Below the pieces are notes generated by a model. That model was not told where the DNA came from. It saw nothing but the letters and a program-made list of their open reading frames with translations, and made no database searches. Positions 187-37,200 of a DNA stretch of 64,000 bases are shown here, piece by piece (position 1 is the stretch's first letter; every line of letters begins with the position of its first letter). The position numbers were made by a program, and so were the translations under genes. The stretch comes from Diadema antillarum (lineage: Eukaryota): NCBI RefSeq assembly GCF_040938485.1, contig NW_027271474.1, forward strand, positions 248,001 through 312,000, given 5' to 3'.

Positions 187-825
187 ATACCTACTCAAGT
201 ATACTCGGGACTCGTCCTCAACTGGTTAACTTGCCATTGAACATGTCTCATTCTTTATTCGGTCCTCCTGTGACAGACACTGTTGTGGATCCCAGCCAGG
301 AATCTCGACAACCCATTTCTGGGACACCTCTGCAAGACACATCCACAGGATCAACTCAAAATGGGACCAACAACAGCTTCACAACAGTTGCCGCGACGGT
401 TGCAGCAACGGAGCCTGCCTCAGTCAGCGCCGGCAAAGTGCCAGAGGATGCCATGGACACAAAAACAACCACAATTGTGCCAGACGTCGCAGCTAATGCG
501 ACGAGAACTACACTGTTGTCCACCATGTCACAGACAATGTTGCAATCTGACGCGCCACAGAGGACTACAATGTTGAATGAGAGCGTTCCCACAACCTCTG
601 CAGGAAGTGGAAATGGCAATCATGGAACAACTAGATTTGTAGAAACGTCCAGCATCTGGAATGTAGGAAATACAACTATGAAAGGAATAGATTATTTATC
701 AAATGTGTCATCAACAACAACAACAACAGCAGCAGCAACAACAACAACAGCGACGAAGACTCCACTGTCGGATGCTAAAACAACGCCAGCAGTTAGACCG
801 CCGGGCGTGATAATCCGTGAACCAC
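187..825 (+). CDS. MUSK: MuSK-like exon: Ser/Thr-rich mucin-like segment
   Basis: Acceptor tttcccatAG at 185-186, donor GTATGT at 826. Open frame of about 213 codons, very T/S-rich with several N-x-S/T sites. Ends in phase 1, matching the next exon. Confidence 0.72.
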
Positions 826-3800
826 GTATGTACAGTTGAACTTTGACGAATATAAATACAAGCTTTGTAGAGTAAAATCGCACAAACAGAGCAGTCTTCA
901 TTATATTAAGATGATAAAGATATGGCAAAGAGTAAAATATAAATTTTGTGTTTTGCCAGGGCAGTGATTTTGGTCACAGTTATACACATACAATTTGTAA
1001 ATAGGATGAGAGAACATCATGATTTAATTTTCTCACATATCTCCCATCTTACTTGCTCACAAATCTTCACTAAAATTCCCTTTCTTTAATACAAATTCAT
1101 TAAGAAATTCTACAGTGTAGCTTGTATCTGTCACATGTTTTATTTTTCTAAAGAGGTAGTAATTCAATAATATTAAGTTTTGTAAAGAGGAGTGAGTTAC
1201 AAACTATAGTCATTGCTGTACAGGCCAAGAGATAGTTTCATATCTTTTACTTCATAGAAATTAATGGGAGAGCTGTGACGTGATATCATCATTGCCTTGT
1301 CACATACATTTGTGACTGTCATCACTTGCTCAAAAAAACTATTTCTAAACTTTTTTTTTTCATTGTGGCAGACCTCACAGTTTTCTGTTTGTCTTTTTAT
1401 TTGTTTCTTTTATTTGTCTGACTTGTTCTTTGTGATAGTCAATTTGAAATCAATTGCATTTATTCAAACTTCCAGTGAAAACAAATAACCCCAACCCCCG
1501 CCACAAAAAAAAGAAAAAAAAAAGAGAGGAATGGTGCTCTTAGAATTCCAGACTTGAGTGTGATTTTTGAACTTTGCTTTGAAATTTGCTATGACATTTT
1601 GCATTGAGTATGCTAACTTCAGAGAAAGCCACAGTATAGTTAAATAATGGCTACACCCTGTAGGCCAAGCAATATGTGCAGCTAGTGGGCTGAGATTAGT
1701 ATGTAATTGTATAGAGCAGACCCTTACGACAATCACGCACCCCTCCCCCCCCCCCCCCAAAAAAAAAAAAAAGAAAAAAAAAAGAAAAAAAAAAAGAATT
1801 TGCTTTCCTGATAACTTCTGAATTTTTAAAAGCTCAAGGAGCGGGATTTTTAGAACATACAGTGTACGTGTACTTCTTTTGGATTTCCAAGAATGAAAAT
1901 CGAGTGAATATTTCTTTGCGGGTCTATAGGAGACTGCAATTCATAACAGCCTCACTTCATCTGATTTGTATAATGCATGATAATGAGCAATATTCACTGT
2001 GTTTTGCAAAAACATGTGAAAGTTAAAAAAAAAAACTGTAACATGTCCCAAGCTTGATTTTGACAAAATATTTGTTCTGTCAACTTGATAATGTCCCATT
2101 TGTTACATTTAACTTTAAAAAGGAGTTACATTTCATATTTTTCTCTTGCGCTTGTGATACTCTATTTAATAGAGGCATGATTTGCATGATGTTGATTACT
2201 GTACATGTTGTGTGTTCACATAATGCATCCCAAAAAGCAGCACCGATTGTGCTGCAGGACCCGCGGAACAGGACGGTGGAATTCGGCAGTGAGGTGATGC
2301 TGCGATGCAAAATTGAGAGCATCTCGACGCCCGAGATCTGGTGGGAGGTGAACGGGAAGCGCATCAATAGAGGTTTCGGGTGGCAGGTGCGCACCCAGCC
2401 ACTGGACGCCCAGTCAGTGAAAAGCATCATTAAGGTGAAGGGGGTCAGTCTGGAGCACGCTGGCCGCTACCAGTGCTTTGCCCGGAATGAAGGCGGCACT
2501 GTGGCATCCAGGCCAGCCTACCTCATTGTGGAGAGTAAGTTTACAGTGATGGCAACTGAACTCAGATTATTTGCTGTGCATGGACTCACTAGTGGTAGCC
2601 CAGGAGTAATAACTGCTGCACTTTATATGTGCAGCAATATTTCATACATGTATGTACCAAATGTAAGGTGTAGCAGAGCGGTGTGCGGCACTAGGTAATA
2701 CCATTCAATATTAACTCATTTATATGGGTTGCCACCGAATGAATATGCAGAGAGGTACATGCTTTAATGCGTGATTGCTGGTATTAAGTACTTGAGTTAC
2801 ATATACAGGTACACCCTGCATGTATTGACTGATGCTCTGCGTACTCCATACTGTAGATTGCTCATTGGGATTTATCAAACTGTAGGTGGCCAGGGAGTGA
2901 CACCATGTCCCCAGTGACTACAGCTTTTGGGAGACTGTGGAGCTACCAAATCTCCCGATCCTTGAGATGGGCCCTGATACTTGAAATTCCTTCATGTTAT
3001 GACAAGAAAATTAAAAAATTTTCCCCGATGTAGAAATAAATTTTGCCCATTGAGATTCATGTGATACATGACTCATTTTCTGATTGCTAATTGTTAAGTC
3101 CTTTATTTGTGTGTATTTTGGCCACCCAGAGATTGGCACAGGAACCTGCATTCTTGTGATTGTCGGATGCAAGCAAGCTTTATTGCAAAAACTGGCATTT
3201 CTTAAGCTAGGTGCAGTGAGTTACGATGTTTGATAGATTGTGTGCATAAGTTTCAGTGTGAAGTTTCCTTGGTGTATGTGATTGCATGTAAATTGTGAAG
3301 ACTTATACAACAACAAAAAAAGTAAAGGAAAAGTGATTTCATGATGAAAGAAGCACAAATGTGAGCAGTTTAAAGAGCGCGATGTATGTATCGTTTGGAT
3401 TGCAGTGGCTCCAGATATAATTGAGGGACCAGGGAATCACAGTGTGCAGTACGGCACTGAACTGAACCTGACGTGTAAGGTTCAGGCCTTCCCACCACCC
3501 AAGATAGCCTGGTTTCGGAATCTAGAACCTTTGTCGGTAAGTCAACTGTGTCACTTTCCCCCCCGAACAGGATATGCAGTGAAACTCCAGAGTTGCTAAT
3601 TTCATGATGACAAGATGGTAATTTTTGCAGCAAAATTGTTCCAAGGACTTGATTGCTTTTAAGGACAAGTTTACGTTCATGAATAATGTGGTTTGAGTGA
3701 ATGCAGCAATAGTAGTAAAACACTTCAGTGAGAGTTTGAGGAAAATTGGACAATCTTTTCAAAAGTTGTGAATTTTTTAAAGTTTTGGTGCTGTCATTGC

Positions 3801-6800
3801 TGGATGAGAAGACTGAGCACTGCAGTTTGTTATTTTACATGTGTAAAACAATATAACGAAGATATAAAGAAAATGTAACATATTTTCACTTTTCTCACAT
3901 AGAGCTCTCGCCTCTTTCAGAAGGCAGGGGATTAATATTACCCTTAATATACATCAGAAACAAGTCGAGGAAATGTGTACCTTTTTTGAAAAATAACATT
4001 TTGCGAAATTCTCTTTATATTTTCCTTATATTGTCTAAGCATGTGACATCATAAACTGTAGTAGTCTCCTCATCCAGCAGTTGACTGCACAGAAACTTTA
4101 AAAAATTCATTACTTTTGAATGCAATGACCAATTTTCCTCAAACTTTCACTGACATGTTCTACTGACATTACTGCATTCACTCAATCCACATGTATGTAA
4201 AGGTGAACTTGTCCTTTAAGGACCTCAAGGTCAAATTACTTCACCTCCTTCTTGAGGACGGGCTGTGGACTTTAACCCATGACATCATGGGCAAGGTAGT
4301 CTTGAGTCCAGCCCCAGCCCTTATGCAGAAGAAAATAAAGGAAAAGTGTTCATAGAACAAAGAGACAGTAAGTGATACAGCCATAATAGGGAACACAGAG
4401 TGTCTGACCTTGTCACCAGAATAAGATAATACAGACGTACGCTGTATACATGTACATCCCCTTTTGTGACTAGTTGCTTTGTATGCACAACACTGTGCCT
4501 GATTCTTTTTCAGGTTTAGGCAAATTTAAATCCACTGTCCAGGAAATAAGGAGAGAACATATTTTTCTTGGTCAGTCTTTGAGCAGTGATTGGGGAGGAA
4601 ATGGCACAAATTAGACAGAATCATTGATATGCTCAGAAAAATAGTACCAAACCATGTTTCACTACTCTGTTCACAGAAGTCTCGAGAAAAATTTCATGCA
4701 TTAGTTTTAAATGTAAAAGAGATAATTTTCAAAATGTGATGCATATTGGATCTTATGCATATCTTTCTTTTGTCTTCAGGAGTGGACCAACTCGAAATTC
4801 ATCATCATCAACGCAACACAGACAGCCAACTACACCTGTTTCTACAGAAACGAGGTCAGCGGGGAAGACAAGTTGGCTGCAAAGGCAGGCTTGGTCACCA
4901 TTGTTGGTGCGCGTCCAAAGTGAGTACAGCATGTCCCTTCTCATATTAAAGCGCAGGTCTTGGGAATTCACAAACTGCACATCTTCAGCAATAGGAAGTA
5001 TGAATGTGTGGGAGGGGTCTATTTAAACAAATGAGGACGTTTAAAAATGTGATTGCTGATGAGGATGCCTTTTAGTTTGTCAACTTTGGAATGTGGCGAT
5101 GCTGAAAAAATTTGGTAACCAAACGTATGGTTCCAGTGAGCAGTGCATTGCATGTTTTTCTGTTACACTAAATTTGTTGTGTGTCACAGTAAGTTTGTAT
5201 TTTGACTTTAACCCCAAAAAGGCCGGGGGAAGGGGGTTCCGCCCCCCTCAACGTTTCATGCAATAATTCTGCAACGCAAGAAGACCTCGCTGCAAGGCTT
5301 CTTGACTTTTTTATTTCAAGTCTCGCAACTTTTGAGACCAAATTTGCAATGTCCACACATACTGTTATGAAGCCATACCCATTTAACAGCATGTCTCCCC
5401 ATAATGGGCACAATTTGGGGATTTTGTGTACTTTTCCTAGAGAAAACAGTGTTCTGTCATAAAACTCATAAGAACCTGTTTATTTTTACTATTTATAACT
5501 TTGATTAATTTTATGCTAATAATGGCAGGAAAGTGGTCCATGACAATTTCCATTGAAAAAACAAAACAAAAGTCAAATAAGAAAGAAATACATAAAATTT
5601 CCAAAAACAATAAAATATGTACAAATTTAAATGTCTTTAGGAAGTTTTTTGATTTACAATTGCTAAATATGTATAAGCAGGGGAGCATTTCATGAAGCAT
5701 TTTGTCCGACAACTTGTCGGACAAAATTGCTCTCAGCCAATCAGACGCAAGGATTTCAGTAGTTTCTAACAGTTTGTCAGAAAAATATCCGACCAAATCG
5801 CTTCATGAAATGCCCCCCCAAAATACAAACCCCAAAATAAACACTCTATACTTTTAATTAGTGTTTAACAAGCTAAAGTAAGATGTTGGACTGAATTTGC
5901 ATAATTAATTGATTAGAATTAGAAAATGAAGATTCAAAAAAATTTATAAAACTTAATCTTGTAGGTTATGACGTGGGTGTCGTGCGTGCCAAATTTTGTT
6001 GCAATTTTGCCACTAATAGCCGACATCTAACCCCCTCCCCTTGATTTAGCATAGCCAAAAAAGCCTGGCCTATTTAGGGTTAAAGGGTGTGTACAGTTCT
6101 GGTCGAGGTGTAGATTTAGCTTTTAACATTTTGCGAGATATTCAGAAACCACTCTATGAGATGTCAAAGAGCATGCAGTTCTAAGGGGTATCAAAAGTTT
6201 ATTCGATGAAAATCGGTTTTGAAATGGCTGAGATATCCAAAAACAAGGTGAAACAAAGAGATCCTAATAAAGTTGGGGCATGTCGCCTTTTATTATTAGC
6301 ACCTTTTTGGATATCTCAGCCATTTGAAAACCAATTTTCATCAAATAAACGTTGAATCCTTCTTAAAATTCATGCTCTTTCATAAGAGGCTTTTCATTAT
6401 CTCACTTAGGAATGTTCAAAACATGAATCCCTACCTCAACCAGTACTGTACAGTCACTTGAAAGTAATGCCTATGTGCCTTGCTGTAACAAAAGTTGATG
6501 TAAAAGATGAGATGTAGAAAGACAAGCTGTCCTCACAAAGCTTAACTCTGGAACCTGTTTTCTCTCCCCTCCCTACCCACCCCACACCCCCACCTTTCCT
6601 CCAGTTACTGTGCGAGGTACAATGGTGCAACGTGCCGTGGCCGCTCAATAGGCAACCCTCACATGTTTGTCTATGGGAAGGGTGAGGAGATGCGGGAAGT
6701 TGACCAGCGACTTCAAAGGGTGCTGTCCAGCGATTCGTTGCTGACCACCTCGGCGCTGTGCCAAGACGGTATCCAGGAGCTGCTGTGCCATGCCACGTAC

Positions 6801-9800
6801 CCAGACTGTGCCAGCTCTGGCACGCAGCTGCTTGGACTGCCCGTCTGCAGGTAGGGTGTTTGAGAATCACCACGAATGTGGATGTTACTGGTGTCCTCGT
6901 GGGATTGTTACTGTTTTGTTAGTGTACTTGTTGAGTGTTATCACCTATAACAAAATGAATGCTGGAACTGCTGATATGTATGTTTTATAATTTTTCATAA
7001 AGATCAGCACCATATGGCATATCATTTATAAAGTTGATAATTTCTTTTCTATTTTGTTCAATGGCAATGTCAATCATTATTGTGGAAATGGTACAGGATA
7101 TCATCTTTACTATATTACATATTATATGTATAGACTAAATATCTATTTTTATTATGCCAGAAGGGGTGATTGCTTACCTTACTCCGTGGAAAGAGATGAT
7201 ACTTATTTCATTATTCTGTCACTGTGGTTCCCGATCACAAATTCAACCACTCATCGAATATCTTACCTGTCCCAATATGCAGATTATTGTGCTGACAAAA
7301 TATGTACACTGTATGCAATACACAGTATTTGCATTTTAACTTCTGATGATGTCACGTAGGGCGGACTGTCTGAAGGTGCACAACGCCTGCGGACGAGACT
7401 GGGGGAATCTCGCGAATAGAAACTTTGACGACTTGGCGTTGAGCATCCGACGGCTCAAGGTGTCCTCGTGTGAGAATCTTCCTGACACGGGCTGCACGAA
7501 GCTCTGGGAGGGTGAGGTTTTGTCTGTTGCCTTTCCTCTAACTTTATCTATGTCTATCTGTCTGTCTGTCTGTCAGACTGTCTGTTTATCTGTTTGACTG
7601 TCGCTTTGTCTGATGAAGTCTTTCGTTATCTCTCTAGCTCACTGTAATGGCAATGGCTCCTAGCTGTAGACTCACTTTTTGCCAATGCTACTTCGTCTTC
7701 TGATGAAATACCCTGTAAAGAAGCCAGCTGTGACCAGACTATAGATAAAATGACATTAAATCTAAAACATAGTCCTCAGAAGGACTCAACGTCCATCTTC
7801 CACCATTTGGAATTTGTTTACATTATATCATCAAGCGGGTCTACCAAGAAACTTGTCTGGCTGACAGGATTTCCCAGGATTATGAGTTGTTTGGGGTATT
7901 TTGAGATCAAAAGGGATCGTAATTTCAATTTGTAGTACACAACTTCTATTCCTGAAGCGCCCTCTCTGTTCAGCAGTGGGTTTGGAAGAGTGTCACTAGT
8001 ATGTGATGATCGAATCACGCCCTAGCTGCAATATTGAATCACAGGCAGCAAACAAGCTGAATTCAATCCACTCATGTGTGACTGCTTCTGCTTTGACCCA
8101 ATCGAATATGAAAGATCACGTAGCAGCCACAATCGGGTATGCTCCCGGCATACCTTTCTTGGTAATATTTCCATTTTCTTCATAAACCAACTGAAATTAT
8201 GCCATCACAACGTAATATCACACATTACACATTTTTTATGCATATAAAAACGTCTCCATTTTAGAGTAAAATTCAACAGTTTCTTCGGGGCCCCGTTTCA
8301 TAAAACTTGTTATCAGTGACAAGTTGTCATAGATGTGACAAGCTACTGAAATCCTTGCATCTGGTTGGCTGAGAGCAAATTTGTCATAGAAATGTGGCAG
8401 TTGTCACTGATAACAAGTCTTATGAAACGGGCCCCAGGTGTGTGAGAACTCTTGTTTTGCCTCAAACCGCTATTCCTCTCTTTCAATTTTGGGAAAGTAT
8501 TGCTTGAAAAATATTGAGGGGCTTGTAATTTTCGAGAGAAAGAATATGCTCCCACCAGCACAAAACTTGGAGCAGCTTTATTCCTTGATGTTTCATTATC
8601 CCTTTGGGGGATTTAGAGTTGGGTTTGGTCCGAGCTGCCAAGTCTCCCTGATTCTGCAGGAGTCTCCCTGAAAATGTCAAAATCTGTTCATGTCTAAATA
8701 AGAGAATATTAAAATCTCCCTGATTTGGGAATTATTTTCGCCCCTTTGAAATGCATGCAACACACAGATATCTCCCTGATTGCTGTGTGGAATCTTCCGG
8801 ATTTGGATGTGGGAATATTGGCAGACCTCCTAGGCCCCGTTTTATCAAAAGATAAAATTGATTTTAGATTTCCTTACTACGCAGGTTGCCATAGACTTAT
8901 AGTTGAAATCAACTACATAATCAATTCTAACTCTTCATAAAACAGGGCCCCAGTTGGAATCATTGAAAATGTTGCTGTGACTTGTCTTTCTCTTTCCCTT
9001 TGGTTTCCAGATGTTCTACATCCTTCCACAACATCAAGTAAGTATTGCTTAGAGTATTTTATTTGAGAGAGAATGAGATGGATAGACAAGAATGTGAAAC
9101 AAACATGATAAAACACATACCTACTGCTGGTTTATACATGTACTTGTTCAGCATGACTGTGTGAAATCCTTGTGTGTGGCTTGGATTTTTCCTCCTGTTT
9201 TTCATTGAAATGTTCAATTTTATGGCTAAGTGTGTAGCATTTCAACATTTTTGGTCGAAGTGATTTCAGCTTGTGTGATGCAAAGATCAAAAGAAATGGC
9301 AAGAAGGAATTGTAAACTTTCACTAGACAGGAAATTGCAAGAAAGAACGAGTTACTTCAAAGAAAACTGCAATATCTGTTTATAGTTGCCCCAGTCTACC
9401 TAGACTTCCTTCCGCTGCATAGAATTTGCAGATGAGCTGTCTTTGGAATTAAGTCTTTATTGCACTGAATGTTGTTTGATAACGTCCTTTCGATGTCAGC
9501 ATTCATTTACATGTTCTAAATGATATTGTGAGAGACAGCTTTATTAGATGATTATCTGCTTATGTTACTGAAATTCAGCATTCTTTGAAAGCTTGAGGCT
9601 GGTTCTGGTTATGTTACTTAAAATTTCTTTTGAGGGCGGTATTGTACTTGTAGTTGGATTTGTCGTATGTGGGAATGGCAACTTTTCGATTTGAAGATTG
9701 TTGTTTAATTCTTAGCCATTTTAGACTCCTAGGTCCTACTATGCAAAGGTAATGGCAGTTTGTGTAAGTGAATGCCTTATTCATTGTTGCCTATGCAGGT

Positions 9801-11030
9801 CCATCGCCCATTTCAACAAGCGGTGGTGACATTTCCACCTTTAGACTCCCAACCAAGATGCCGCGCTTACCGACTGACCTCCAGGAGCCAGCTATCCATT
9901 CAGTTCCCGAAAATTCCCCAATGTTTCTCATCCTTGTCATCACGGTACCAACAGGTGCTGTTGTTTTTGTGGCTGTAGCTATCATCACAATAATCCTCGT
10001 GAAGCGGCACCACTACCCACCAGAGTTCAACTTGCCCAAGAACATTGACCTGAGCGGGCTAGTGGACAACCCAATGTACGGTAAAAGCTTCAATCCCAGC
10101 TTCAACCCCCAACTTGCGTATCTGGAGTACAATCGCAACAGCGTCATCTACGAGAAAGACATCGGGGAGGGGGCGTTTGGGCGCGTGTTCAAGGCTACCG
10201 CACCCAGCCTGGTCAAGGGTGATGCAGAGACGTCAGTGGCTGTGAAGATGCTGAAGAGCACAGCAGACAGGGCGGTGACGGAATACTTCAATCGGGAAGC
10301 GGAGATGATTGCCCGATTCAGCCACCAGAACATAATTCGGCTCCTGGGCGTATGCTTTGTGGGTAAGCCCCTGTGTCTGCTGCTGGAGTACATGGCTGAG
10401 GGGGATCTGGAGGACTTCCTGCACTCCCGCAGCCCTCATCCCAACCAGGGCAACTCCCGGGCCTCTAGCAGGCCCGCAGAGGGCCTCAAGACATATCAGA
10501 AACTGAACATGGCCAGGCAGGTTGCCAACGGGCTGGTGTACCTCCGCGAGCGCAGGTTTGTGCACCGGGACATTGCCACGCGGAACTGCCTTGTGAGCAG
10601 CAACCTGGACGTGAAGATATCGGACTTTGGCCTAGCCCGCTATCTGGGGCCCAAGGACAAGTTCATCGGACACAAAGAGGAACACATCCCAATCCGATGG
10701 ACAGCCCCCGAGGCACTCTGGTTCTACCAGTTCACATTTGCCTCGGATGTGTGGTCCTTTGGGGTGCTCCTGTGGGAACTGTTCACCTACGCGCAGCAAC
10801 CGTACTCTACCCTGTCGCACGAGGACGTCTTCCTCCACACAAGGCAGGGCTATCGGCTGGAATGCCCAGAGAACACCCCGCAGCAAGTGTACAAGATCAT
10901 GGGACAGTGCTGGGAAGTGGAGCCGGCCGACCGGCTCCCATTCAAGCTGGTACGGGACAAGTTGGCCAGCATGGAGTTTGAATGGCTTGCCAATGGGGAG
11001 GAGTCCCCTCCTGACCCCATGGATTCATAG
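187..11030 (+). CDS. MUSK: MuSK-family receptor tyrosine kinase, 5'-partial, 7 exons: 187-825, 2241-2534, 3406-3536, 4780-4919, 6605-6850, 7360-7511, 9799-11030
   Basis: All junctions are GT..AG with compatible phases (1,1,0,2,2,1). The exons total 2834 nt = 2 + 944 codons including the stop. Domains: S/T-rich region, 2 Ig, Fz-CRD, TM, juxtamembrane DNPMY..NPQLAYLEYNRN, kinase DIGEGAFGRVFKA/VAVKML/HRDIATRN/DFG/IPIRW. These motifs are MuSK-like from recalled MuSK sequence. Signal-peptide exon(s) lie upstream of the window. Confidence 0.88.
2241..2534 (+). CDS. MUSK: MuSK-like exon: I-set Ig domain
   Basis: PIVLQDP..VMLRC..IWWEVNG..HAGRYQCFARN..LIVE. AG at 2239-2240, GTAAGT at 2535; phase 1-1. 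Confidence 0.9.
3406..3536 (+). CDS. MUSK: MuSK-like exon: second Ig domain, N-half
   Basis: APDIIEGPGNHSVQYGTELNLTCKVQAFPPPKIAWFRN. AG at 3404-3405, GTAAGT at 3537. Confidence 0.9.
3663..4215. mobile_element. Non-autonomous TTAA-targeting element (Kolobok-like, family A) in MuSK intron
   Basis: Long imperfect terminal inverted repeats (ggacaagtt..gaatgcagcaat..gaggaaaattgg.. versus its reverse complement), flanked by TTAA at 3659-3662 and 4216-4219. Confidence 0.75.
4780..4919 (+). CDS. MUSK: MuSK-like exon: second Ig domain, C-half (missed by the ORF track)
   Basis: Reads EWTNSKFIIINATQTANYTCFYRNEVSGEDKLAAKAGLVTIVGARP. Pyrimidine-rich acceptor tgtcttcAG, donor GTGAGT at 4920; phase 0-2. 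Confidence 0.85.
5212..6079. mobile_element. piggyBac-type non-autonomous element
   Basis: TTAA|CCCCAAAAAGGCCGGG at the left and CCTGGCCTATTTAGGG|TTAA at the right: CCC..GGG termini with a TTAA duplication. No transposase ORF. Confidence 0.65.
5680..5817. mobile_element. Short MITE (Harbinger-like termini) nested in the piggyBac-type element
   Basis: TIR ggggagcatttcatgaagc / gcttcatgaaatgcccccc. The core ttgctctcagccaa.caga.gcaaggatttcagtag is shared, inverted, with the MITE at 8287. Confidence 0.65.
6084..6458. mobile_element. TTAA-targeting non-autonomous element (Kolobok-like, family B)
   Basis: TTAA|AGGGTGTGTACAGTTCTGG..CCAGTACTGTACAGTCACT|TGAA, with an internal ~39-bp inverted repeat (6205-6243 / 6304-6342). 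Confidence 0.75.
6605..6850 (+). CDS. MUSK: MuSK-like exon: Frizzled-type CRD, first part
   Basis: YCARYNGATC..ALCQDGIQELLCHATYPDC..LPVCR. Acceptor ctttcctccAG, donor GTAGGG at 6851. Confidence 0.88.
7360..7511 (+). CDS. MUSK: MuSK-like exon: Frizzled-type CRD, second part
   Basis: ADCLKVHNACGRDW..SSCENLPDTGCTKLWE completes 10 CRD cysteines. Donor GTGAGG at 7512. Confidence 0.85.
8287..8436. mobile_element. Harbinger-like MITE
   Basis: TIR of about 35 bp: ggggccccgtttcataaaacttgttatcagtgacaa / ttgtcactgataacaagtcttatgaaacgggcccc. Confidence 0.7.
8632..8826. mobile_element. Degenerate MITE with repeated TCTCCCTGA motif
   Basis: Short TIR ctgccaa/ttggcag and four tctccctga copies. Related fragments (agctaccaaatctcc) occur near 2940 and 13070. 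Confidence 0.4.
8833..8951. mobile_element. Harbinger-like MITE
   Basis: Termini ggccccgttttat / ataaaacagggcccc. Confidence 0.55.
9799..11030 (+). CDS. MUSK: MuSK-like terminal exon: stalk, TM helix, NPMY juxtamembrane motif and complete tyrosine kinase domain
   Basis: Acceptor gcctatgcAG at 9797-9798. TM MFLILVITVPTGAVVFVAVAIITIILV; NPMY at 10068-10079; all kinase subdomains present; TAG at 11028-11030. Confidence 0.95.
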
Positions 11031-13184
11031 TGGAACGCTGTTTTATTGTGAAAGTACAGTATTCTTTTCTGTTTTGATATTGAATTTCAAAAGAGGAAAT
11101 GAAACAAGTTATGGTGCAAAAAAAGTAGAAGCTTGATGCTGGAGATCATTCTTACATTACTCGGAGATGATATGTGGGAATGAATGGTGCTTGCATTACG
11201 GGAGAGACTGGGAACTATGTTAAATCGAAGCTTCCATTTCAACATGTGCTTCAGACGACGTCTGAACCAAAAGTGTATTTTGTGTGACATGTGCAGTGCA
11301 GGCTCAAAGAATGAGTTTGGTCTAGCACGGCTGCATGGAGTAGCCATTATTGAGATGTCGGGGGGGGGGGGGGGGGGGGGGGGGAGGGGGGGAAGAGCGT
11401 CAAACTGTCCAAATGCCCTCATGCAGTGCACCCTTTGATTGAAGAAAAGACAGCTTTTGTCCGTCACCATACAACGTTAGGAATGATACAAGAGCTAGCA
11501 ATGGCTGAGTATATCTTTTTGCTTCAGTTTCTTGAGCAGTGCAGTCTGTATTCTTTTTCTAGTCCTTCTAAAAGGAATTGTGCCTAATCCACATAGCATT
11601 GTAGGCTTTCCTTGCTAGGTTAGTCTTGTAAGCTTGAAAGCTGTAGTATGGATTTGGCAAACCCAACTGAAGAAGCATTGCCAAGGCATCCATTTGTTTC
11701 ATATCACAAATATAAATGTGTTTCTGGAAAGATTATGCTTCAATTGCAGGACTAAATTCATGCAAATGCAAAACTGAAATACTATTTATTGTTGATGAAA
11801 GGTAAAATGAATCACCAACTGCACTTGCGATTTGGCTCTTTACAAATTTCCCTCATTACCAGATACTGATTTTTGGAGTAAGTGAACATCAGATGGGCTT
11901 GTTGGAACATGCCTTGTCCATCAAATCCTGCTGTCTTACCCCTGATATCTATTGGAAATGCATGCTATAGCAAAAGTAACTCATCCCCAGTGGGCTAACT
12001 TAAGGGTGTCTACTCACTGCTCAATCAAATCATGCTTTGCATGTTTGTGATGATTTTCTTGGATTACACATTCTTTACGAAGGCTATGCTTACAATTTCA
12101 AAATGATTGTCCAGCTCTTTAGGCATGTATGTAACTTCAGATGACTATGTATTGTAGTGCCGATTTAATACGTGAACAGTTTAATGCTCTTGATCTATGT
12201 TGAGTGGAAGAAAGCCTGTACAAATAATGGAAATACTTTGAAAGACATCCAAAGGTCCTATATTTTTTCCTGTCTTCAAGAAGGGAGAGGCTTTGAATTC
12301 AAAATATTTCAATCACTTTTCCTGTACCATTTCCATCCTTGTAGGAAAAAGTACATGCTTAAAAGGGCTCTACTTTTACTCTCAAATTCCAGTCTCTCAC
12401 CCATGGATTGTTCTTGTGTAGTTGTATTGACATTAATATGTCAAATCAAAGGCACTCCCTGAAGCAGCGTGACTGACATGCTTTACAATATGTGGGGCTT
12501 TGACTTGAGTTGCTGTTAATGTGCACATAGTTTTCCATTGGTTACAGACCGAGCCTCACATGTTGAAGAATCACAAAAGTGAGCACTTCTAGGCGACCCT
12601 CTTCCGTTGAAGTGTAGCGCATTCATTCCATGTACATGTTGTACCATTGCATCAAGTCTTCTGTTGTCTGAAAATGACATTGATATCAACTCTGAATTTA
12701 TTTTTGTCAAAAGTATTTTTTAAGATGTAATTAGTTTTGTACATTATGCTGCATGCTGTCTGTAAATTGCGTAAAATATGTCTTTCATATTGTGAGTCAC
12801 ATGTCAGAGATGCCACCTTATCCCTTGTGCCATATGGCAGAAATTCAAGATCAGGAGAGGTCGGGTAAATCTCTGAAAACTAGTGTGAACTCGCACAAAA
12901 TTTTTATGAGTTTCACAAATTTGATATGATTGTTGATTCAGCATGAAACTTTGCTGACCCTTAAAGGCAGTGAAGTCCTGTGCATGTGCAGAAATTTCAA
13001 GCAGAAGATGTGTATTAACTGCAAGGTTAAGAATAGATAAATTAACAATATAATTCTTTGAAGATAAAGCTACCAAATCTCCTTGATAACTTGCCCAATA
13101 CTCTTTTATGCCTAGATGCCAGATGACACAGGTGGTTACTTGCGATTTCGGCAGTATGCCTTCTGAGAAGAGACCCCCTTACGA

Positions 13185-22465: not shown

Positions 22466-25400
22466 GTGTGTGACACACATCACTGGTGTAGTGTGTGACA
22501 CAGATCACTGGTGTAGTGTGTGACACAGATCACTGGTGTAGTGTGTGACACAGATCACTGATGTAGTGTGTGACACAGGTCACTGGTGTAGTGTGTGACA
22601 CAGATCACTAGTGTGTGACACAGATCACTGGTGTAGTGTGTGACACAGATCATTGGTGTAGTGTGTGACACAGGTCACTGGTGTAGTGTGTGACACAGAT
22701 CACTGGTGTAGTGTGTGACACAGATCACTGGTGTAGTGTGTGACACAGATCACTGATGTAGTGTGTGACACAGATCACTGGTGTAGTGTGTGACACAGGT
22801 CACTGGTGTAGTGTGTGACACAGATCACTGGTGTAGTGTGTGACACAGGTCACTGATGTAGTGTGTGACACAGATCACTGATGTAGTGTGTGACAAAGAT
22901 CACTGGTGTAGTGTGTGACACAGATCACTGATGTAGTGTGTGACACAGATCACTGGTGTAGTGTGTGACACAGATCACTGATGTAGTGTGTGACACAGAT
23001 CACTGGTGTAGTGTGTGACACAGATCACTGGTGTAGTGTGTGACACAGATCACTGGTGTAGTGTGTGACACAGGTCACTGGTGTAGTGTGTGACACAGAT
23101 CACTGGTGTAGTGTGTGACACAGGTCACTGGTGTAGGGTGTGACACAGGTCACTGGTGTAGTGTGTGACACAGATCACTGGTGTAGTGTGTGACACAGAT
23201 CACTGGTGTAGTGTGTGACACAGATCACTGGTGTAGTGTGTGACACAGATCACTGATGTAGTGTGTGACACAGATCACTGGTGTAGTGTGTGACACAGAT
23301 CACTGATGTAGTGTGTGACACAGGTCACTGGTGTAGTGTGTGACACAGGTCACTGATGTAGTGTGTGACACAGGTCACTGGTGTAGTGTGTGACACAGGT
23401 CACTGGTGTAGTGTGTGACACAGGTCACTGGTGTAGTGTGTGACACAGGTCACTGGTGTAGTGTGTGACACAGATCACTGATGTAGTGTGTGACACAGAT
23501 CACTGATGTAGTGTGTGACACAGATCACTGGTGTAGTGTGTGACACAGATCACTGATGTAGTGTGTGACACAGATCACTGGTGTAGTGTGTGACACAGAT
23601 CACTGGTGTAGTGTGTGACACAGGTCACTGGTGTAGTGTGTGACACAGATCACTGATGTAGTGTGTGACACAGATCACTGGTGTAGTGTGTGACACAGAT
23701 CACTGGTGTAGTGTGTGACACAGGTCACTGGTGTAGTGTGTGACACAGATCACTGATGTAGTGTGTGGCACAGATCACTGGTGTAGTGTGTGACACAGGT
23801 CACTGGTGTAGTGTGTGACACAGATCACTGATGTAGTGTGTGACACAGATCACTGGTGTAGTGTGTGACACAGGTCACTGATGTAGTGTGTGACACAGAT
23901 CACTGGTGTAGTGTGTGACACAGATCACTGATGTAGTGTGTGACACAGATCACTGGTGTAGTGTGTGACACAGATCACTGGTGTAGTGTGTGACACAGGT
24001 CACTGGTGTAGTGTGTGACACAGATCACTGGTGTAGTGTGTGACACAGATCACTGATGTAGTGTGTGACACAGATCACTGGTGTAGTGTGTGACACAGGT
24101 CACTGGTGTAGTGTGTGACACAGATCACTGGTGTAGTGTGTGACACAGGTCACTGGTGTAGGGTGTGACACAGGTCACTGGTGTAGTGTGTGACACAGGT
24201 CACTGGTGTAGTGTGTGACACAGATCACTGGTGTAGTGTGTGACACAGATCACTGGTGTAGTGTGTGACACAGATCACTGGTGTAGTGTGTGACACAGGT
24301 CACTGGTGTAGTGTGTGACACAGATCACTGATGTAGTGTGTGGCACAGATCACTGGTGTAGTGTGTGACACAGGTCACTGGTGTAGTGTGTGACACAGAT
24401 CACTGGTGTAGTGTGTGACACAGATCACTGATGTAGTGTGTGACACAGGTCACTGGTGTAGTGTGTGACACAGATCACTGATGTAGTGTGTGACACAGAT
24501 CACTGATGTAGTGTGTGACACAGGTCACTGGTGTAGTGTGTGACACAGATCACTGGTGTAGTGTGTGACACAGGTTACTGGTGTAGTGTGTGACACAGAT
24601 CACTGATGTAGTGTGTGACATAGATCACTGGTGTAGTGTGTGACACAGATCACTGATGTAGTGTGTGACACAGATCACTGATGTAGTGTGTGACACAGAT
24701 CACTGGTGTAGTGTGTGACACAGATCACTGATGTAGTGTGTGACACAGATCACTGGTGTAGTGTGTGACACAGATCACTGGTGTAGTGTGTGACACAGGT
24801 CACTGGTGTAGTGTGTGACACAGATCACTGATGTAGTGTGTGACACAGATCACTGGTGTAGTGTGTGACACAGATCACTGGTGTAGTGTGTGACACAGGT
24901 CACTGGTGTAGTGTGTGACACAGATCACTGATGTAGTGTGTGACACAGATCACTGGTGTAGTGTGTGACACAGGTCACTGGTGTAGTGTGTGACACAGAT
25001 CACTGGTGTAGTGTGTGACACAGGTCACTGGTGTAGTGTGTGACACAGATCACTGATGTAGTGTGTGACACAGATCACTGATGTAGTGTGTGACACAGGT
25101 CACTGGTGTAGTGTGTGACACAGATCACTGATGTAGTGTGTGACACAGATCACTGATGTAGTGTGTGACACAGATCACTGATGTAGTGTGTGACACAGGT
25201 CACTGGTGTAGTGTGTGACACAGATCACTGGTGTAGTGTGTGACACAGGTTACTGGTGTAGTGTGTGACACAGATCACTGATGTAGTGTGTGACATAGAT
25301 CACTGGTGTAGTGTGTGACACAGGTCACTGATGTAGTGTGTGAAACAGATCACTGATGTAGTGTGTGACACAGATCACTGGTGTAGTGTGTGACACAGAT

Positions 25401-26916
25401 CACTGATGTAGTGTGTGACACAGATCACTGGTGTAGTGTGTGACACAGATCACTGGTGTAGTGTGTGACACAGGTCACTGGTGTAGTGTGTGACACAGAT
25501 CACTGATGTAGTGTGTGACACAGATCACTGGTGTAGTGTGTGACACAGATCACTGGTGTAGTGTGTGACACAGATCACTGATGTAGTGTGTGACACAGGT
25601 CACTGATGTAGTGTGTGACACAGGTCACTGATGTAGTGTGTGACACAGATCACTGGTGTAGTGTGTGACACAGGTCACTGATGTAGTGTGTGACACAGGT
25701 CACTGGTGTAGTGTGTGACACAGATCACTGGTGTAGTGTGTGACACAGGTCACTGGTGTAGGGTGTGACACAGGTCACTGGTGTAGTGTGTGACACAGGT
25801 CACTGGTGTAGTGTGTGACAGATCACTGGTGTAGTGTGTGACACAGATCACTGGTGTAGTGTGTGACACAGATCACTGGTGTAGTGTGTGACACAGGTCA
25901 CTGGTGTAGTGTGTGACACAGATCACTGATGTAGTGTGTGGCACAGATCACTGGTGTAGTGTGTGACACAGGTCACTGGTGTAGTGTGTGACACAGATCA
26001 CTGATGTAGTGTGTGGCACAGATCACTGGTGTAGTGTGTGACACAGGTCACTGGTGTAGTGTGTGACACAGATCACTGGTGTAGTGTGTGACACAGATCA
26101 CTGATGTAGTGTGTGACACAGGTCACTGGTGTAGTGTGTGACACAGATCACTGATGTAGTGTGTGACACAGATCACTGATGTAGTGTGTGACACAGGTCA
26201 CTGGTGTAGTGTGTGACACAGATCACTGGTGTAGTGTGTGACACAGGTTACTGGTGTAGTGTGTGACACAGATCACTGATGTAGTGTGTGACATAGATCA
26301 CTGGTGTAGTGTGTGACACAGATCACTGATGTAGTGTGTGACACAGATCACTGATGTAGTGTGTGACACAGATCACTGGTGTAGTGTGTGACACAGATCA
26401 CTGGTGTAGTGTGTGACACAGGTCACTGGTGTAGTGTGTGACACAGATCACTGATGTAGTGTGTGACACAGATCACTGGTGTAGTGTGTGACACAGATCA
26501 CTGGTGTAGTGTGTGACACAGGTCACTGGTGTAGTGTGTGACACAGATCACTGATGTAGTGTGTGACACAGATCACTGGTGTAGTGTGTGACACAGGTCA
26601 CTGGTGTAGTGTGTGACACAGATCACTGATGTAGTGTGTGACACAGGTCACTGATGTAGTGTGTGACACAGGTCACTGATGTAGTGTGTGACACAGATCA
26701 CTGGTGTAGTGTGTGACACAGGTCACTGATGTAGTGTGTGACACAGATCACTGGTGTAGTGTGTGACACAGATCACTGATGTAGTGTGTGACACAGATCA
26801 CTGGTGTAGTGTGTGACACAGATCACTGGTGTAGTGTGTGACACAGGTCACTGGTGTAGTGTGTGACACAGATCACTGGTGTAGTGTGTGACACAGATCA
26901 CTGGTGTAGTGTGTGT
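22466..26916. repeat. 25-bp minisatellite/satellite array, consensus GTGTGTGACACAGATCACTGGTGTA, about 178 units
   Basis: Head-to-tail 25-bp period with two common A/G variable positions, a few rare variants and one 2-bp deletion near 25820. No spacers. Confidence 0.97.
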
Positions 26917-31280: not shown

Positions 31281-34200
31281 CTGTTTAGTAAAACAGAAAA
31301 CAATAAAGTGAGATGATCGAGAATTAGTATTTACGTTTTTCATTATCAAACTGGCAAATAAATCAGTTCTTCTATAATGAATTCTAGTATTCGGTATTCA
31401 ATACATACTGTTTGCACCTTCAGTATGATACAAAATGCAAACACTAATATCAATTTGATATCATAATTTTGAACACATCATTATTGGGCATGAATATTGT
31501 TATCATAAAATTTACCATCTAAGGAATTGTCATCGTCAGTCTGTTATCACCCCATGTGGGATATTCACTCCCCCCCCCCCCCCAACTTTTAATTTTGCAT
31601 TCATCACTCTTATCACAAGCTTATGAGATAGTGATGTAACTATGACAACAAATGAAACAAGAATGTTATGAATTTGTTAAGACACTCACCTCCATGAAGC
31701 TGCCGTCTGCGCGGACGAATTCGAAGGCCATGATGGCTGGGATCCAGATGAGGGAGGAACAGATCATCATCCAGCCGAGGGCGTGGGCCCAGCCGGGGAA
31801 CTCGTAGCTGCCGGCCGTTGGGAAGGTCCAGTTAGCCCAGTTGAAGCCGAGAACAAACTGTAAGAGGAATGGAAGAAAAGTGAGAGGGTAAATATTCAGG
31901 ATTGAATATGGAGTCTCCTTTCCCATCCCTATTTTATGAATCCAGACAGAGACTAAGATGCATATTGAAAATAGTGACTTTGAAGACTTGATACTGACAG
32001 ACCACAGAATTTTACAGGAAGGGGTTTCTAAAGATGATTTAAGTGTTTAAAGCAGTCCCTTGTTTTTCCTTAAATGATTCTGTGGGTGAGTATCCTTTTT
32101 CTTCTTTTTTTTTTCCATCTAAAGTTGTGAATCGACTTCAGTGGCATTTTGCACAAACAGAAAACAAGGACAAAACAATGGTGCATTAATTGAAGGCAGT
32201 CTCTAATACATTTCACTACTGTGCTTTATATCTGCCAGATATGCAGTAAGGCAGAGCAATTTCTTTTGAAAGTCAGAAGTTTATAAGTTCAATGGAAGCC
32301 ACAGCTTCATCAAGACTGTGTACCAATTCTAGTAGAGAGACACTTACCAGGAGCACTCCGGGGGTGATGCAGCACCAGGTGAGCGGCCAGAAGTTGAAGA
32401 GGACGTTGTCGACGATGCGGTCTCCCAGCATGGACCTGATGTCGTTGGTGAAGCGCTTGACGCCGTAGATCCAGCCGAGGCCGATGCACTCGCAGAGCCC
32501 GAAGATGAGCAGGGCGAAGTCGGCAGCATACTTGTCCATGAGGATGACCCAGTAACCGCCAGCCTGGGTGACACAGCTGAATCCGAGAAGAAAGCCGATC
32601 AGACAGTACGCCAGCACCACGATGGGCTTGCGCTTGCGCAGCGAGGGAAACTCATCCATAATTGCCGTGACGACCGTTTCGACGATGCAGAACTGGGGTT
32701 AGAGATGGATGCAAAGAATACGGACCAAGTGAGTGACTTGGTTCTTCCAAGATGGAAGTCAAAAGATGCAGTACAAAGTGATCTTTGACACATGCATTGT
32801 ACATGACAACTTGTCTTTATTTCACAGGATGATTAACACGAGGGCTTATATTGGCTAGTACACCAGGGTTCAAAGGTCACCACATTTGATCTTTTAATGC
32901 ATCTTCACAGACATTCTGTAGCATGTCATGTATTAATGATGAGGAATCAATGTATCCTTACCTGACTGTCCATGCCGAGGGTGAGAAGCATGAAGAAGAA
33001 GAGAATGGCCCAGAGGGGCGATACGGGGAGAAGAGTGACGGCCTCGGGGTATGCGATGAATGCCAGCCCAAATTCTGTAGAAGTCATAAAAAAAGAGATG
33101 ACAGTCTTTTTAGAGACATTAGCATTTTCATTAGACAGAGTCATACAAGTTTTTATTTAATAATTTAGCCAGCAATAATGTTGTGCTAAGTATCCTCGCT
33201 TTCCTATTCTGTAAGTAGACCATTCATGCATGATTCTGCTCGGATACTGGTATGGGCGTATCCACACTTGGCCTGTATTATCTGCAGTATACCTGCATGG
33301 ATTATTCATGTTTATTGGCCTATGAATAGGCATACTTTAGACACCATCATTATAATATGTATCTCACAACTCATTCTGAATGGCTGATTGACAGCATTTT
33401 CATATTTAACAAGAAAAATGAGAATTCAAATCCTTCAAACTGATTTACTGACATCCAAAGAACTGATTCACTGACATTTATTGTCTCTCTGCAACACACA
33501 CACACACACAAACAAACAAACAAAGGGAGGGGGAATATACTTACGTTCATCAACCACCTTGTCTACCGGCTTATCCAGGACGTGAGCCATGTGGCCCAGG
33601 ATAGAGAAGATCACAAATCCAGCGAAGACGGAGGTGCCGCAGTTCATGATGGGCACGATCATGGCGTCACGGAAACAGTTGTTCTTGAACTTGTTGTAGG
33701 AGGAGAGCGTGATAAGACCACCCCAGGAGGCGCTGAGGGAGTAGAAGATCTGGACGGCAGCATCCTTCCACACCTAGGTGATGGGGGGAGGAGAAGATGG
33801 AGAGGGATTATAAAATATCCCATCCAGTGCATTTATCTTCACATGCTTTGTGCAAACATACCTATATAGGCACCTATTTATGAAGCTGTTATATCCTGTT
33901 GACTCAGAATAGGTCACAATGATGATATGTTACCAACTCGAGAGAGAATAAGATGAGTACATGGGATGAATATAGAACTTAGAAGTATAGATTGACATGT
34001 TGTGAAATAAGAAGAGTGAGATATTAGGAGACAGCTATGCAGGCGCAGGTATTGAAAAAGAGCTTGAAAGAATTTAACATATTGACCATTGAAAAACTGG
34101 TGAAGTTTAGCTTTGTTTACTATTCCTATATTTCTATTTGTAAATTCATGGATATGTCTGCTGCTAGAGGTGATGAAAGCCCCATTGTTGAGCAGCACTG

Positions 34201-37200
34201 AGTAATTATCACTGAGAAAAAGGAGGCTTACCTTAGGATTCTGGAGAAGGTGCCACTCGGGGTAGATGAAGAACTTGATGCCTTCCCACTGACCCTCCAG
34301 GGTAAGCCCGCGGATGAGGAGGATGAAGAGCACCACGTAGGGGAAGGTGGCGGTGAAGTAGACCACCTTGCCGGATGACTTCACACCCTTGACCAGGCAG
34401 AAGAACATGAGGGCCCAGGCGAAGAACAGGCACAGGGTGAGCTTCCAGCTCACCACGCCCGGCTCGCCGATGCTCCCCGATTCGTTCAGCATCCCGTACC
34501 TGCACAAAAGTACGGAGAGACAATGATTGTCATTTCAGGGTCAGACTTCAGAGGACATGCCTATCAAGGCTAGATTATAATCGATTGGCTGAATGCCAAG
34601 GTCAAACGCGCCTTGCTGTGGTTATGGGTCAGATGATTTCAATAATGGCTTCTCGGGGGACAAAAAAAAAACAAAAACAGCAGACTACAGTAATCATTTC
34701 AACATAATCATTCTCTGTTTAATCAAAGTGGAATAGCGCCATCTACGTTGAAAGCAGTGCAATATTGTAGTCATCAAACAAGTGCAGTTGGCTACGCGTT
34801 GTCAGTTATGGGAAAGCTGACATAGTAATCAGTGTCTCCTTGATTGCCTTCAGCTCTATGCCATTGAGAGAATGGATTTATTGAAGGTCATTTTTATTTG
34901 AAAAGTCACACTCTACAAAATATCCACGAGAGTCGCCTGTCCGCAACAATTAACAACGAGAGGAGCATAGATGCGGCCTTGGTCGACCAACGAAATTGAA
35001 ATAAACCAAATTGCAACTACCCTGCTCGCACAATTTCTCCTGAGAGGAATGAATATGCAATTTCTTTGTCACTGGCGTGTTTACATCCATATAACATGTA
35101 ATATATAAACCTAATATTTTTTCATCAACGTTATCGCCTTCATTTTCTAAGGCAAGAAAAGCACAAAAGTAGACAGAAAATGCGTCGCAAGCAAGCACAG
35201 ACACATATACACATATAGACACACATACACATGTCATGTACTAGATGCGCACTTAACAAAAACGCAAAACTATAGGAAAGTGTAATTTCTTACTTGTAGA
35301 ACTGGGCGGAGGGGCTCTCGCGAAGTTCGTGCGACGGATCGCTGTACCCGGTGAAGTTACCGTCCTCTGAGAAGGTGACGTTGTACTGGGCCAGCTCCGT
35401 GTCCGTCATGTTGGCGACCGACACGCACTCGTTGCTGTCCGTCATGATCCCGCCGGCGGCCAGGCACTCCTTGACGAGCTCGGAGCAGAAGGGCGTGTTC
35501 CACGAATGGTGGCAGCCCTCCCACGGCAGCACGGCCGAGAACGAATGGAAGAAGTAGAAGAGCGAGTAGGTGATGATCACGTTGTAGTAGATCCCCACGA
35601 TGGCGGACACGACAACCATACCGTAGCCAACGCCTGGTCAATAACAAGAGGAGACAAAAATGGTTAGGTTGCTCGACCCATTACTAATAGTAGATCTATT
35701 AAATGTAAACAGACGATGAGATCGAATTACGCGTTTTTCATTCATATACTGTATCTGTAGTGTAAGTGTTGGGTCGCATAATTGTGATTACTTTTGCAGT
35801 GTCGTCGGGGAAAGACCAAGAAAGTACTAGGCATGTTTTATTCAATGTAAGTTCTTGGAGAGGCCATTAACAATGACAAACAAAGAGAAACGCAAAGAGA
35901 AGGTATCTTTCTGCCGTAACCCCCACCCCCCCCCCCAAAAAAATGCCCTTGTTTTGTATTGGGTGTATGTGTTGTATTTAATGTTCACCGCTGGGCCGGC
36001 AAAATGACCATCTCCCCATTAGGACCAATTATAAACCATTTGGCTCTCAATACGGACAGTATTTGTTCGTTTGTTTCATCAAGTTTGAAGGTTGGGGGGG
36101 GGGGGGGAGATAATAAATGCCATCTGAATTTGACCATGGACCTACTTTGACGTAGGTGTGTGTATTTCGATCCTGAAAAGTCTATCGGAGTGTGACGGTA
36201 ATCTTCTGTCCTGACGTCAGAAATATGTAGAAAATTGGGTTTAATTATCTGTGTGCAGCCATTGCTGCAAAGCCATGACTATTTCCTCCTCGCAACCCTA
36301 GTATTTACTTTTGCAACTCACACGCAAGAAACAATCCACCGGATGTCACAAAACTATACAATAGCGAACATTAGATCTGCGACGTAAACGCTAAGACGAC
36401 GCTATTAGGCACGAAAAGATGTTCTGCACATGGGCAGGACATCTGTTTGTATCATCCAACCCCCGGAGGAAACGTCGTCTTAGCGTTCGCGTCGCAGATC
36501 GAAAGCTCGCTAATACATAATGGACTTCTGACTAGGCGGCCAAAGTTATGTGTCCGTGTTTGGGTTTCTGGTTATGTTGTGTTTTTGTTCTGTTTTTTTT
36601 TTTTTTCAAGAATCGGTGATTCGGGGCTCAAATTATTGTTTGCACACTCACGGTGAATCATTCGCATACGCAAAACGCGTTTTCATTGTATGTGCGGTTT
36701 AGCAGACACACACAGCCCTGCCACACAGACACACCCACCCACACACAGACGCTCACAGGGAAAAATAACGAGAGAAACAGAAAGAGGGAGAGGCGAGAGA
36801 TAGAAGGGTAGACAACGTATTTTACGAAGACGCTGATTGGCCAATGGACACTCACCTCGCATTAATGGCACTGCGTTCCACGCCCTGATTGGTCCGCTGC
36901 TGCAATACTGACCGAAGGCCAGTTCCAGGAAAAAGAGCGGCACTCCAGCGAGACACAGCATCACGAGATACGGAATCAAAAAGGCGCCTGAAAAATTGTG
37001 GAGAACAAAACGTACGAGATATTTTTTAGCTTTGCATTTATCATATGCGAATTTTAATCAGTAATCATAATTGTCTATTCTAGAAGGAAATCGAAAGGAG
37101 AAATCGTGTTCGTGGAGGAAGTTTGTGTCAGTGTGTATACGGCGTCGTTACATTACATATCATACGCATTCTGTATATAGTTTCACAAAAACATGACGCC

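Follow-up and report, generated by a model that had tools for sequence, protein, structure and literature searches.

Vertebrate MuSK is a textbook case of tight autoinhibition by an activation loop. In the unphosphorylated enzyme the loop blocks the active site, with Tyr754 forming hydrogen bonds to Arg728 and to Asp724, the catalytic aspartate, and activity requires the phosphorylated forms of Y750, Y754 and Y755; a rat MuSK in which all three tyrosines were changed to Phe was inactive (PMC5035991). EGFR, another receptor tyrosine kinase (RTK), is active without loop phosphorylation (PMC5035991). The YxxxYY motif formed by the three MuSK tyrosines is common to the whole insulin-receptor-like group, and it marks a mechanism, not a family. 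Here we analysed the MuSK gene of the sea urchin Diadema antillarum, which lies on the plus strand of a 64,000-nucleotide stretch of contig NW_027271474.1 (positions 248,001 to 312,000; hereafter the window). The loop of its kinase lacks all three tyrosines, and so do the loops of the other sea urchins that we compared. The sea-urchin loop is a genuine variant of a well-known kinase and has been conserved; sea urchins provide natural and strongly conserved MuSK orthologues having Gly, then Lys, Ser or Cys, and then Phe at these positions.

The loop, from DFG to APE, is encoded at 10623-10712 (+) and translates exactly to DFGLARYLGPKDKFIGHKEEHIPIRWTAPE. It occupies residues 286-315 of an open reading frame (ORF) of 420 codons, 9768-11030 (+), which contains the last exon of the gene; residue numbers below are those of this ORF. 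HMMER aligned the loop gap-free, and at equal length, to the MuSK chains of rat and human, and this alignment places Gly, Lys and Phe at the positions of Y750, Y754 and Y755 (Table 1), so that the YxxxYY of MuSK is absent. The sole tyrosine of the loop, Y292, stands at DFG+4, two residues before the Y750 position. The loop letters, the three substitutions, the equal length and the tyrosine two residues upstream had been noted in an initial annotation made from the letters of the window, and all of these points held. Its statement that GEGAFG, VAVK, the alphaC Glu, HRDIATRN, DFG and NPMY in the juxtamembrane region are intact held as well. An alignment of 43 MuSK-family sequences shows no variation at the G-loop, Lys, alphaC Glu, HRD, Asn and DFG. 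A pseudokinase is recognised by having lost one or more of three residues (VAIK Lys, HRD Asp, DFG Asp), and the Diadema kinase retains them all.

We compared the underlying bases with other samples. Contigs of an independent Diadema DNA sample covered 9802-10605 with one difference and 10582-11167 with none. The genome of Diadema setosum encodes the same 30 loop residues, with three synonymous and no non-synonymous differences. Over the whole kinase domain the two species differ by 26 synonymous changes and one non-synonymous change, corresponding to a synonymous divergence (dS) of 0.148, a non-synonymous divergence (dN) of 0.0016 and an omega (dN/dS) of 0.011. The omega values were 0.067 for the whole last exon and 0.10-0.19 for the exons of the immunoglobulin (Ig) and Frizzled (Fz) domains. 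These estimates were restricted to the two Diadema species, dS being saturated between Diadema and camarodont mRNA. As the independent sample agrees, the reading frame is intact, the introns are GT-AG and omega is 0.011, we excluded an assembly artefact or a decaying pseudogene as the source of the unusual loop; the chance of either is negligible. The intact catalytic motifs and the strong purifying selection also make the Diadema kinase look catalytically competent, in line with the initial annotation, which had taken it for an active-looking kinase rather than a pseudokinase.

For transcription, the clearest case came from another sea urchin. A 6-kb contig of run SRR6173504 contains a complete, intron-free orthologue of 928 codons followed by a 3-kb tail, and because it is intron-free we take it to be a spliced mRNA. 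Two small Diadema runs of unspecified library type gave short contigs, with 0-2 differences, on the last exon and its 3' end. Repeats aside, these contigs had no match to the introns, the Fz exons or the microexon in the unique window sequence examined, and no splice joint was seen in them. No Diadema sequencing run is recorded as RNA. The pattern suggests that MuSK is transcribed in Diadema.

The assignment of the kinase to the MuSK family was clear from searches and trees alike. Its best PDB matches were four MuSK chains at 314-317 bits, compared with 237 bits for TrkB and 212 for the insulin receptor. Over its last exon the gene shares 97% of amino acids and 95.5% of bases with the D. setosum RefSeq entry 'muscle, skeletal receptor tyrosine protein kinase-like'. 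We collected homologues by an exhaustive HMMER search over 1.84 billion representatives, by cluster look-ups and by a search with a full-length query. RefSeq-named MuSK or MuSK-like orthologues were found in the sea urchins D. setosum, S. purpuratus (XP_792218.4) and Lytechinus variegatus, the crinoids Anneissia and Antedon, the sea stars Acanthaster, Patiria and Asterias, the brittle star Amphiura, the sea cucumbers Apostichopus and Holothuria, and the acorn worms Ptychodera, Saccoglossus and Glandiceps. In a quick tree of 108 rows the MuSK/Nrk clade including the Diadema gene had a support of 97. A careful tree, built by maximum likelihood from 48 kinase domains, separated MuSK/Nrk from Ror and Trk at 100/99. 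Inside the clade it recovered three groups, namely chordates (amphioxus with vertebrates) at 93/80, protostomes at 97/95 and ambulacrarians at 100/99, the branching order of the three being weakly supported (81-93). In the ambulacrarian group each echinoderm class was monophyletic, every species had one gene, and the species tree was followed. Two leads were dropped on the way. The first word search accepted proteins of 0.55-1.75 times the query length; this length limit excluded full-length receptors and left just unnamed ORFs of 54% identity, which gave the false impression of an orphan lineage. One EGFR chain, 9p9u, was among the high-scoring PDB hits owing to a two-stretch match that inflates its score, and it was not used.

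The initial annotation had called the gene a MuSK paralogue, which would leave room for an additional, canonical YxxxYY MuSK elsewhere in the genome. We observed one MuSK-clade gene per species across five echinoderm classes and three hemichordates, and neither the exhaustive HMMER search nor a word search of named proteins revealed a second one in any echinoderm or hemichordate. Those of the close but unnamed hits that were checked came from an annelid, nemertean, mite or tunicate. RTK subfamilies are also generally represented by a single gene in non-vertebrate deuterostomes (Brunet et al., PMC4898815). Because there is one gene per species, because the gene tree mirrors the species tree and because single RTK representatives are the rule in these animals, the Diadema gene is best regarded as the sea-urchin orthologue of MuSK, apparently in single copy, and the word paralogue is not supported. 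It is very improbable that the gene is an extra divergent paralogue of a canonical MuSK, and a hidden second copy in the Diadema genome is unlikely.

Next, we compared the loop residues of 18 ambulacrarian sequences with those of chordates and protostomes. Vertebrates, amphioxus, arthropods and the Ror and Trk outgroups have Tyr at all three positions, and most lophotrochozoans have His at 750 followed by the YY pair. Among the ambulacrarians position 750 is Gly in 17 of the 18 sequences and Glu in the remaining one, that of the sea cucumber Apostichopus. At 754 and 755, crinoids have YY, and sea cucumbers have Tyr followed by Tyr or Phe. Acorn worms carry Phe or His at 754, and brittle stars carry Leu, Ser or Val, both with Tyr at 755. 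Sea stars have His or Gln at 754, with Tyr at 755 in Acanthaster and Phe in Patiria and Asterias, and one further holothurian-like ORF reads FF at the two positions. All five sea urchins have Lys, Ser or Cys at 754 and Phe at 755. All three tyrosines are thus missing in every sea urchin compared, and the sea stars and brittle stars retain one or none.

This distribution points to a stepwise history. Tyr at 750 disappeared a single time, in the stem common to echinoderms and hemichordates, and the P+1 segment went from WMPPES to WT(A/S)PE(A/S) in that ambulacrarian stem too. Later the YY pair was eroded repeatedly, and in the sea-urchin stem it was gone, with Phe kept at 755. The loss is thus old, and not the recent event that the initial annotation had implied. 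Position 755 is aromatic in every sequence, yet it flips between Tyr and Phe several times, which suggests that the ring matters at this position and the hydroxyl does not.

The main alternative to a loop that works without phosphate is that loop phosphorylation was retained and its acceptor moved to the DFG+4 tyrosine, Y292 in Diadema. FAK and Pyk2 also have a tyrosine at DFG+4. The five sea urchins, the three sea stars and the sea cucumbers all carry Tyr at this position; a tyrosine is present there wherever no canonical loop tyrosine is left, and all 18 ambulacrarian sequences keep at least one Tyr at either DFG+4 or 755. However, DFG+4 is His in crinoids and in some brittle stars, and it is Tyr or Phe among hemichordates (Phe in Ptychodera), these changes falling in some of the lineages that keep a canonical tyrosine; the supposed acceptor is therefore not conserved. 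The rule of at least one tyrosine may also be due to chance, the independent lineages being few. We consider a relocated switch distinctly unlikely.

The juxtamembrane docking site, an NPxY that recruits Dok-7 in MuSK, gave a mixed picture. The initial annotation had stressed that the NPxY site is kept, and this is right for Diadema; NPMY is also the reading of most sea urchins, sea stars and crinoids, and of two acorn worms out of three. The motif varies elsewhere in the clade: S. purpuratus has NLMY, the sea cucumbers and Glandiceps have NPMF, and the brittle stars have NPLF. The docking tyrosine is thus not constant in the ambulacrarian MuSK clade.

From these comparisons we consider it moderately probable that sea urchins have an active MuSK which no longer uses the triple-phosphotyrosine switch of the insulin-receptor type, and which would be driven by dimerisation and controlled by other means. 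Dimerisation by a ligand or a co-receptor would activate the kinase with no need for loop phosphorylation, and the loop would reach its active form without phosphate, as it does in EGFR. Control would have moved to the juxtamembrane region (NPMY and the Tyr residues that follow it) and to partner proteins, and the single tyrosine at DFG+4 may share in it. A pseudosubstrate lock of the Tyr754 type, together with its phospho-switch, is impossible in sea urchins because residue 754 is Lys, Ser or Cys. The regulation without the canonical phospho-switch that the initial annotation had proposed is in this sense a reasonable idea, and its general reading would be right.

Several points weigh against an active kinase controlled in this manner. 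We infer both the activity and the mode of control of ambulacrarian MuSK from sequence alone. As the rat triple-Phe MuSK is dead (PMC5035991), compensating changes must exist in the sea-urchin enzyme. As NPxY is not conserved in the clade, a juxtamembrane docking switch is not a general solution. Finally, the loop in an AlphaFold model is extended and active-like, but it is equally so in a canonical bat MuSK used as a control. The Diadema model had a predicted local distance difference test score (pLDDT) of 89 (about 91 in the loop), and it lay 1.3-2.4 Å from activated RTKs and 5.1 Å from the autoinhibited structure 1LUF; the bat control, built on the same alignment, showed the same secondary structure of the loop. 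The predicted loop form is accordingly non-discriminating, and we did not use it as evidence.

The same mutant data bear on a different possibility, namely that sea-urchin MuSK is a low-activity scaffold or pseudokinase that signals mainly via its ectodomain and adaptors, as has been proposed for vertebrate ROR1 and ROR2, and keeps the kinase fold for structure or ATP binding. Besides the inactivity of the rat triple-Phe mutant (PMC5035991), this possibility can draw on the long ambulacrarian branch in the careful tree, where the stems measure 0.37 and 0.50 substitutions per column versus 0.06 for the chordates. It has a precedent in these two RORs, in which kinase activity has been lost among relatives of MuSK (PMC4100928). 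Unlike in ROR1 and ROR2, however, every catalytic residue of the ambulacrarian kinases is canonical and invariant, and the whole-domain omega of 0.011 is as strict as expected for a working enzyme. We regard the scaffold as unlikely, and an active kinase freed of the triple-tyrosine switch remains our preferred reading.

A more far-reaching version of this preferred reading is possible, and we put it forward tentatively as a set of three parts taken jointly. Ambulacrarian MuSK, and most fully that of sea urchins, may be an RTK of the insulin-receptor class wholly freed of loop trans-phosphorylation, in which (a) the loop and the P+1 segment would have been remodelled toward the Eph/Abl/EGFR type, (b) gating would now be by dimerisation and by juxtamembrane or partner control, and (c) the triple-tyrosine autoinhibition of chordates would be a retained ancestral state, kept along with the agrin-Z/Lrp4/Dok-7 pathway.

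Features of the gene and its surroundings are collected in Table 1.

Table 1. Exons, domains and key residues of the Diadema MuSK gene and neighbouring features, in positions of the window
Feature	Positions	Strand	Description
Exon 2	277-825	+	Mucin-like Ser/Thr-rich N-terminal region; 549 bases, 183 codons, frame-neutral
Exon 3	2241-2534	+	First Ig domain; Pfam Ig_3 3.7e-12, I-set 2.3e-10; GT-AG
Exon 4	3406-3536	+	Second Ig domain, N-terminal half; Pfam I-set 1.7e-07; junctions read
Exon 5	4780-4919	+	Second Ig domain, C-terminal half; tblastn with sea-urchin orthologues; junctions read
Exon 6	6605-6851	+	Frizzled cysteine-rich domain, cysteines 1-6; Pfam Fz 1.1e-06; splice sites read
Exon 7	7360-7510	+	Frizzled cysteine-rich domain, cysteines 7-10; aligned to sea-urchin orthologues; splice sites read
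Exon 8	9011-9037	+	27-base microexon D-V-L-H-P-S-T-T-S (9 codons), frame-neutral; ends cag|...|gtaagt
Exon 9 (last)	9799-11030	+	1232 bases; stalk, transmembrane helix, juxtamembrane region, whole kinase domain, C-tail, stop codon
Transmembrane helix	9921-10001	+	ORF residues 52-78; 27-residue hydrophobic run, then KRHH
NPMY, juxtamembrane	10068-10079	+	ORF residues 101-104; aligned with NPMY of MuSK
Tyrosine-kinase domain	10149-10964	+	Pfam PF07714 (PK_Tyr_Ser-Thr), E = 2.3e-88; ORF residues 128-399, complete
GEGAFG	10164-10181	+
VAVK Lys	10245-10247	+
alphaC Glu	10296-10298	+
HRDIATRN	from 10563	+
Tyr292 (DFG+4)	10641-10643	+	Sole loop Tyr
Y750 equivalent	10647-10649	+	Gly294
Y754 equivalent	10659-10661	+	Lys298
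Y755 equivalent	10662-10664	+	Phe299
Satellite	22466-26915		4.45 kb; ~178 copies of the 25-base unit GTGTGTGACACAGATCACTGGTGTA, 95% matches
SLC6/SNF exons	32273-34507	-	Sodium:neurotransmitter symporter; Pfam PF00209, E = 7e-22 and 2e-32
Retrotransposon ORF	50150-53152	-	Long interspersed nuclear element (LINE) type; 1000 codons, uninterrupted; apurinic-type endonuclease (PF03372) and reverse transcriptase (PF00078)

We placed eight exons (2-9) of the MuSK gene in the window, and all the introns between them are GT-AG. The window does not reach exon 1, which codes for the signal peptide and lies further upstream; the first intron of the D. setosum MuSK-like gene is about 18 kb long. Exon 2, read with its acceptor and donor, is 89% identical to residues 27-211 of the D. 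setosum MuSK-like protein (tblastn), and in S. purpuratus the RefSeq isoform X2 equals X1 minus exactly this mucin exon. Exon 3 is 95% identical to the D. setosum MuSK-like sequence. The Pfam Fz match of exon 6 falls below the gathering score because the exon holds just part of the domain; in tblastn, exon 6 also matched the Fz domains of MuSK and Nrk proteins. The microexon has a homologue, 92% identical in DNA, in the gene model of D. setosum, the acceptor of exon 9 at 9798/9799 is canonical, and the transmembrane helix aligns with the transmembrane segment of the full-length MuSK chain 8s9p. Taken together, exons 2-7 encode an ectodomain in which a mucin-like region is followed by two Ig domains and by a Frizzled cysteine-rich domain (CRD) with ten cysteines; this exon set is of the MuSK type and speaks for the identity of the gene.

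No kringle exon was found in the Diadema MuSK gene within the window, and Pfam detected no kringle in any of the four full-length sea-urchin MuSK proteins. The domain is kept in the crinoid, sea-star, brittle-star, sea-cucumber and most acorn-worm orthologues. Mammalian MuSK is also without a kringle, and its loss there and in sea urchins looks like a parallel one.

Two tyrosines of the kinase domain outside the loop are specific to echinoderms. Y173 (10284-10286) stands just before the alphaC Glu, where almost all other family members have Asp, and Y320 (10725-10727) stands in the ALWxY that follows APE, where all non-echinoderm members have Asn.

The introns of the gene hold dispersed repeats of very high copy number at 6400-6566, 7736-8069 and 8237-9071, with inverted-repeat joints near 8315-8402. 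In both Diadema species their summed contig depth is in the hundreds at 7736-8069 and reaches hundreds of thousands at 6400-6566 and 8237-8403. The satellite of Table 1 lies about 11 kb downstream of the gene and is responsible for a strong local GC skew. The exons of a neurotransmitter symporter and a retrotransposon frame follow further along the window, on the opposite strand.

The MuSK gene itself is ordinary and not new, being already auto-annotated in several echinoderm genomes. We found no description of the loop or the function of echinoderm MuSK in a literature search that omitted most subscription journals. If the sea-urchin kinase is active, it would reveal the compensating changes that free an insulin-receptor-like kinase from loop phosphorylation, and the relatives of sea urchins supply graded intermediates with YY, one Tyr or none. 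An active kinase would also give a comparative handle on the time at which the chordate control logic of agrin, Lrp4, MuSK and Dok-7 arose. If it is inactive, it would be a pseudokinase that is invisible to motif scans.

Compared with vertebrate and amphioxus MuSK (1LUF; CAH1243560.1), Diadema MuSK shares the kinase clade, the Ig domains and Frizzled CRD, the single transmembrane helix, the juxtamembrane NPMY, the length of the loop and all the catalytic motifs, at a kinase-domain identity of 45-49%. The two differ in the loop, which reads RYLGPKDKF in Diadema and RNIYSADYY in MuSK, in the P+1 segment (WTAPEA versus WMPPES) and in the ectodomain, where Diadema has two Ig domains and a mucin-like exon against three Ig domains. 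By its functional definition MuSK is activated by agrin and Lrp4 at neuromuscular synapses. Sea-urchin agrin has no Z exons, which in chordates activate Lrp4-MuSK (PMC12445529), and for this reason the upstream or ligand logic may differ in echinoderms.

The MuSK proteins of other ambulacrarians are orthologous to that of Diadema, and they share with it Gly at 750 (Glu in Apostichopus), WT(A/S)PE and the aromatic residue at 755. Unlike Diadema, crinoids and Holothuria keep the YY pair, and one Tyr is left in brittle stars, Acanthaster and acorn worms. Most of these orthologues also have a kringle, unlike the sea urchins. The protostome Nrk or 'Ror2-like' kinases belong to the family clade too and likewise have a Frizzled CRD, but they keep the YY pair (YxxxYY in arthropods, HxxxYY in most lophotrochozoans), and most have a kringle.

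When only the 50 residues around the Diadema loop were compared, Eph (40.8 bits), ABL1 (39.2) and Pyk2 (37.8) scored slightly above chordate MuSK (about 36). The whole kinase domain, unlike those of the EGFR, Eph, Abl or Src type, is clearly MuSK (317 bits versus less than 240 for the others). The likeness of the loop segment to Eph and ABL1, a matter of a few bits, may be due to convergence, WTAPE being a common form. In Eph receptors it is mainly juxtamembrane tyrosines that gate the kinase.

The pseudokinases ROR1 and ROR2 belong to neighbouring families, and they resemble Diadema MuSK in having ectodomains built from the Ig/Frizzled/kringle set and in their atypical regulation (PMC4100928). 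They keep YxxxYY and have deviant residues in the ATP site, whereas Diadema MuSK is the reverse, with its catalytic residues intact and its loop tyrosines of YxxxYY gone.

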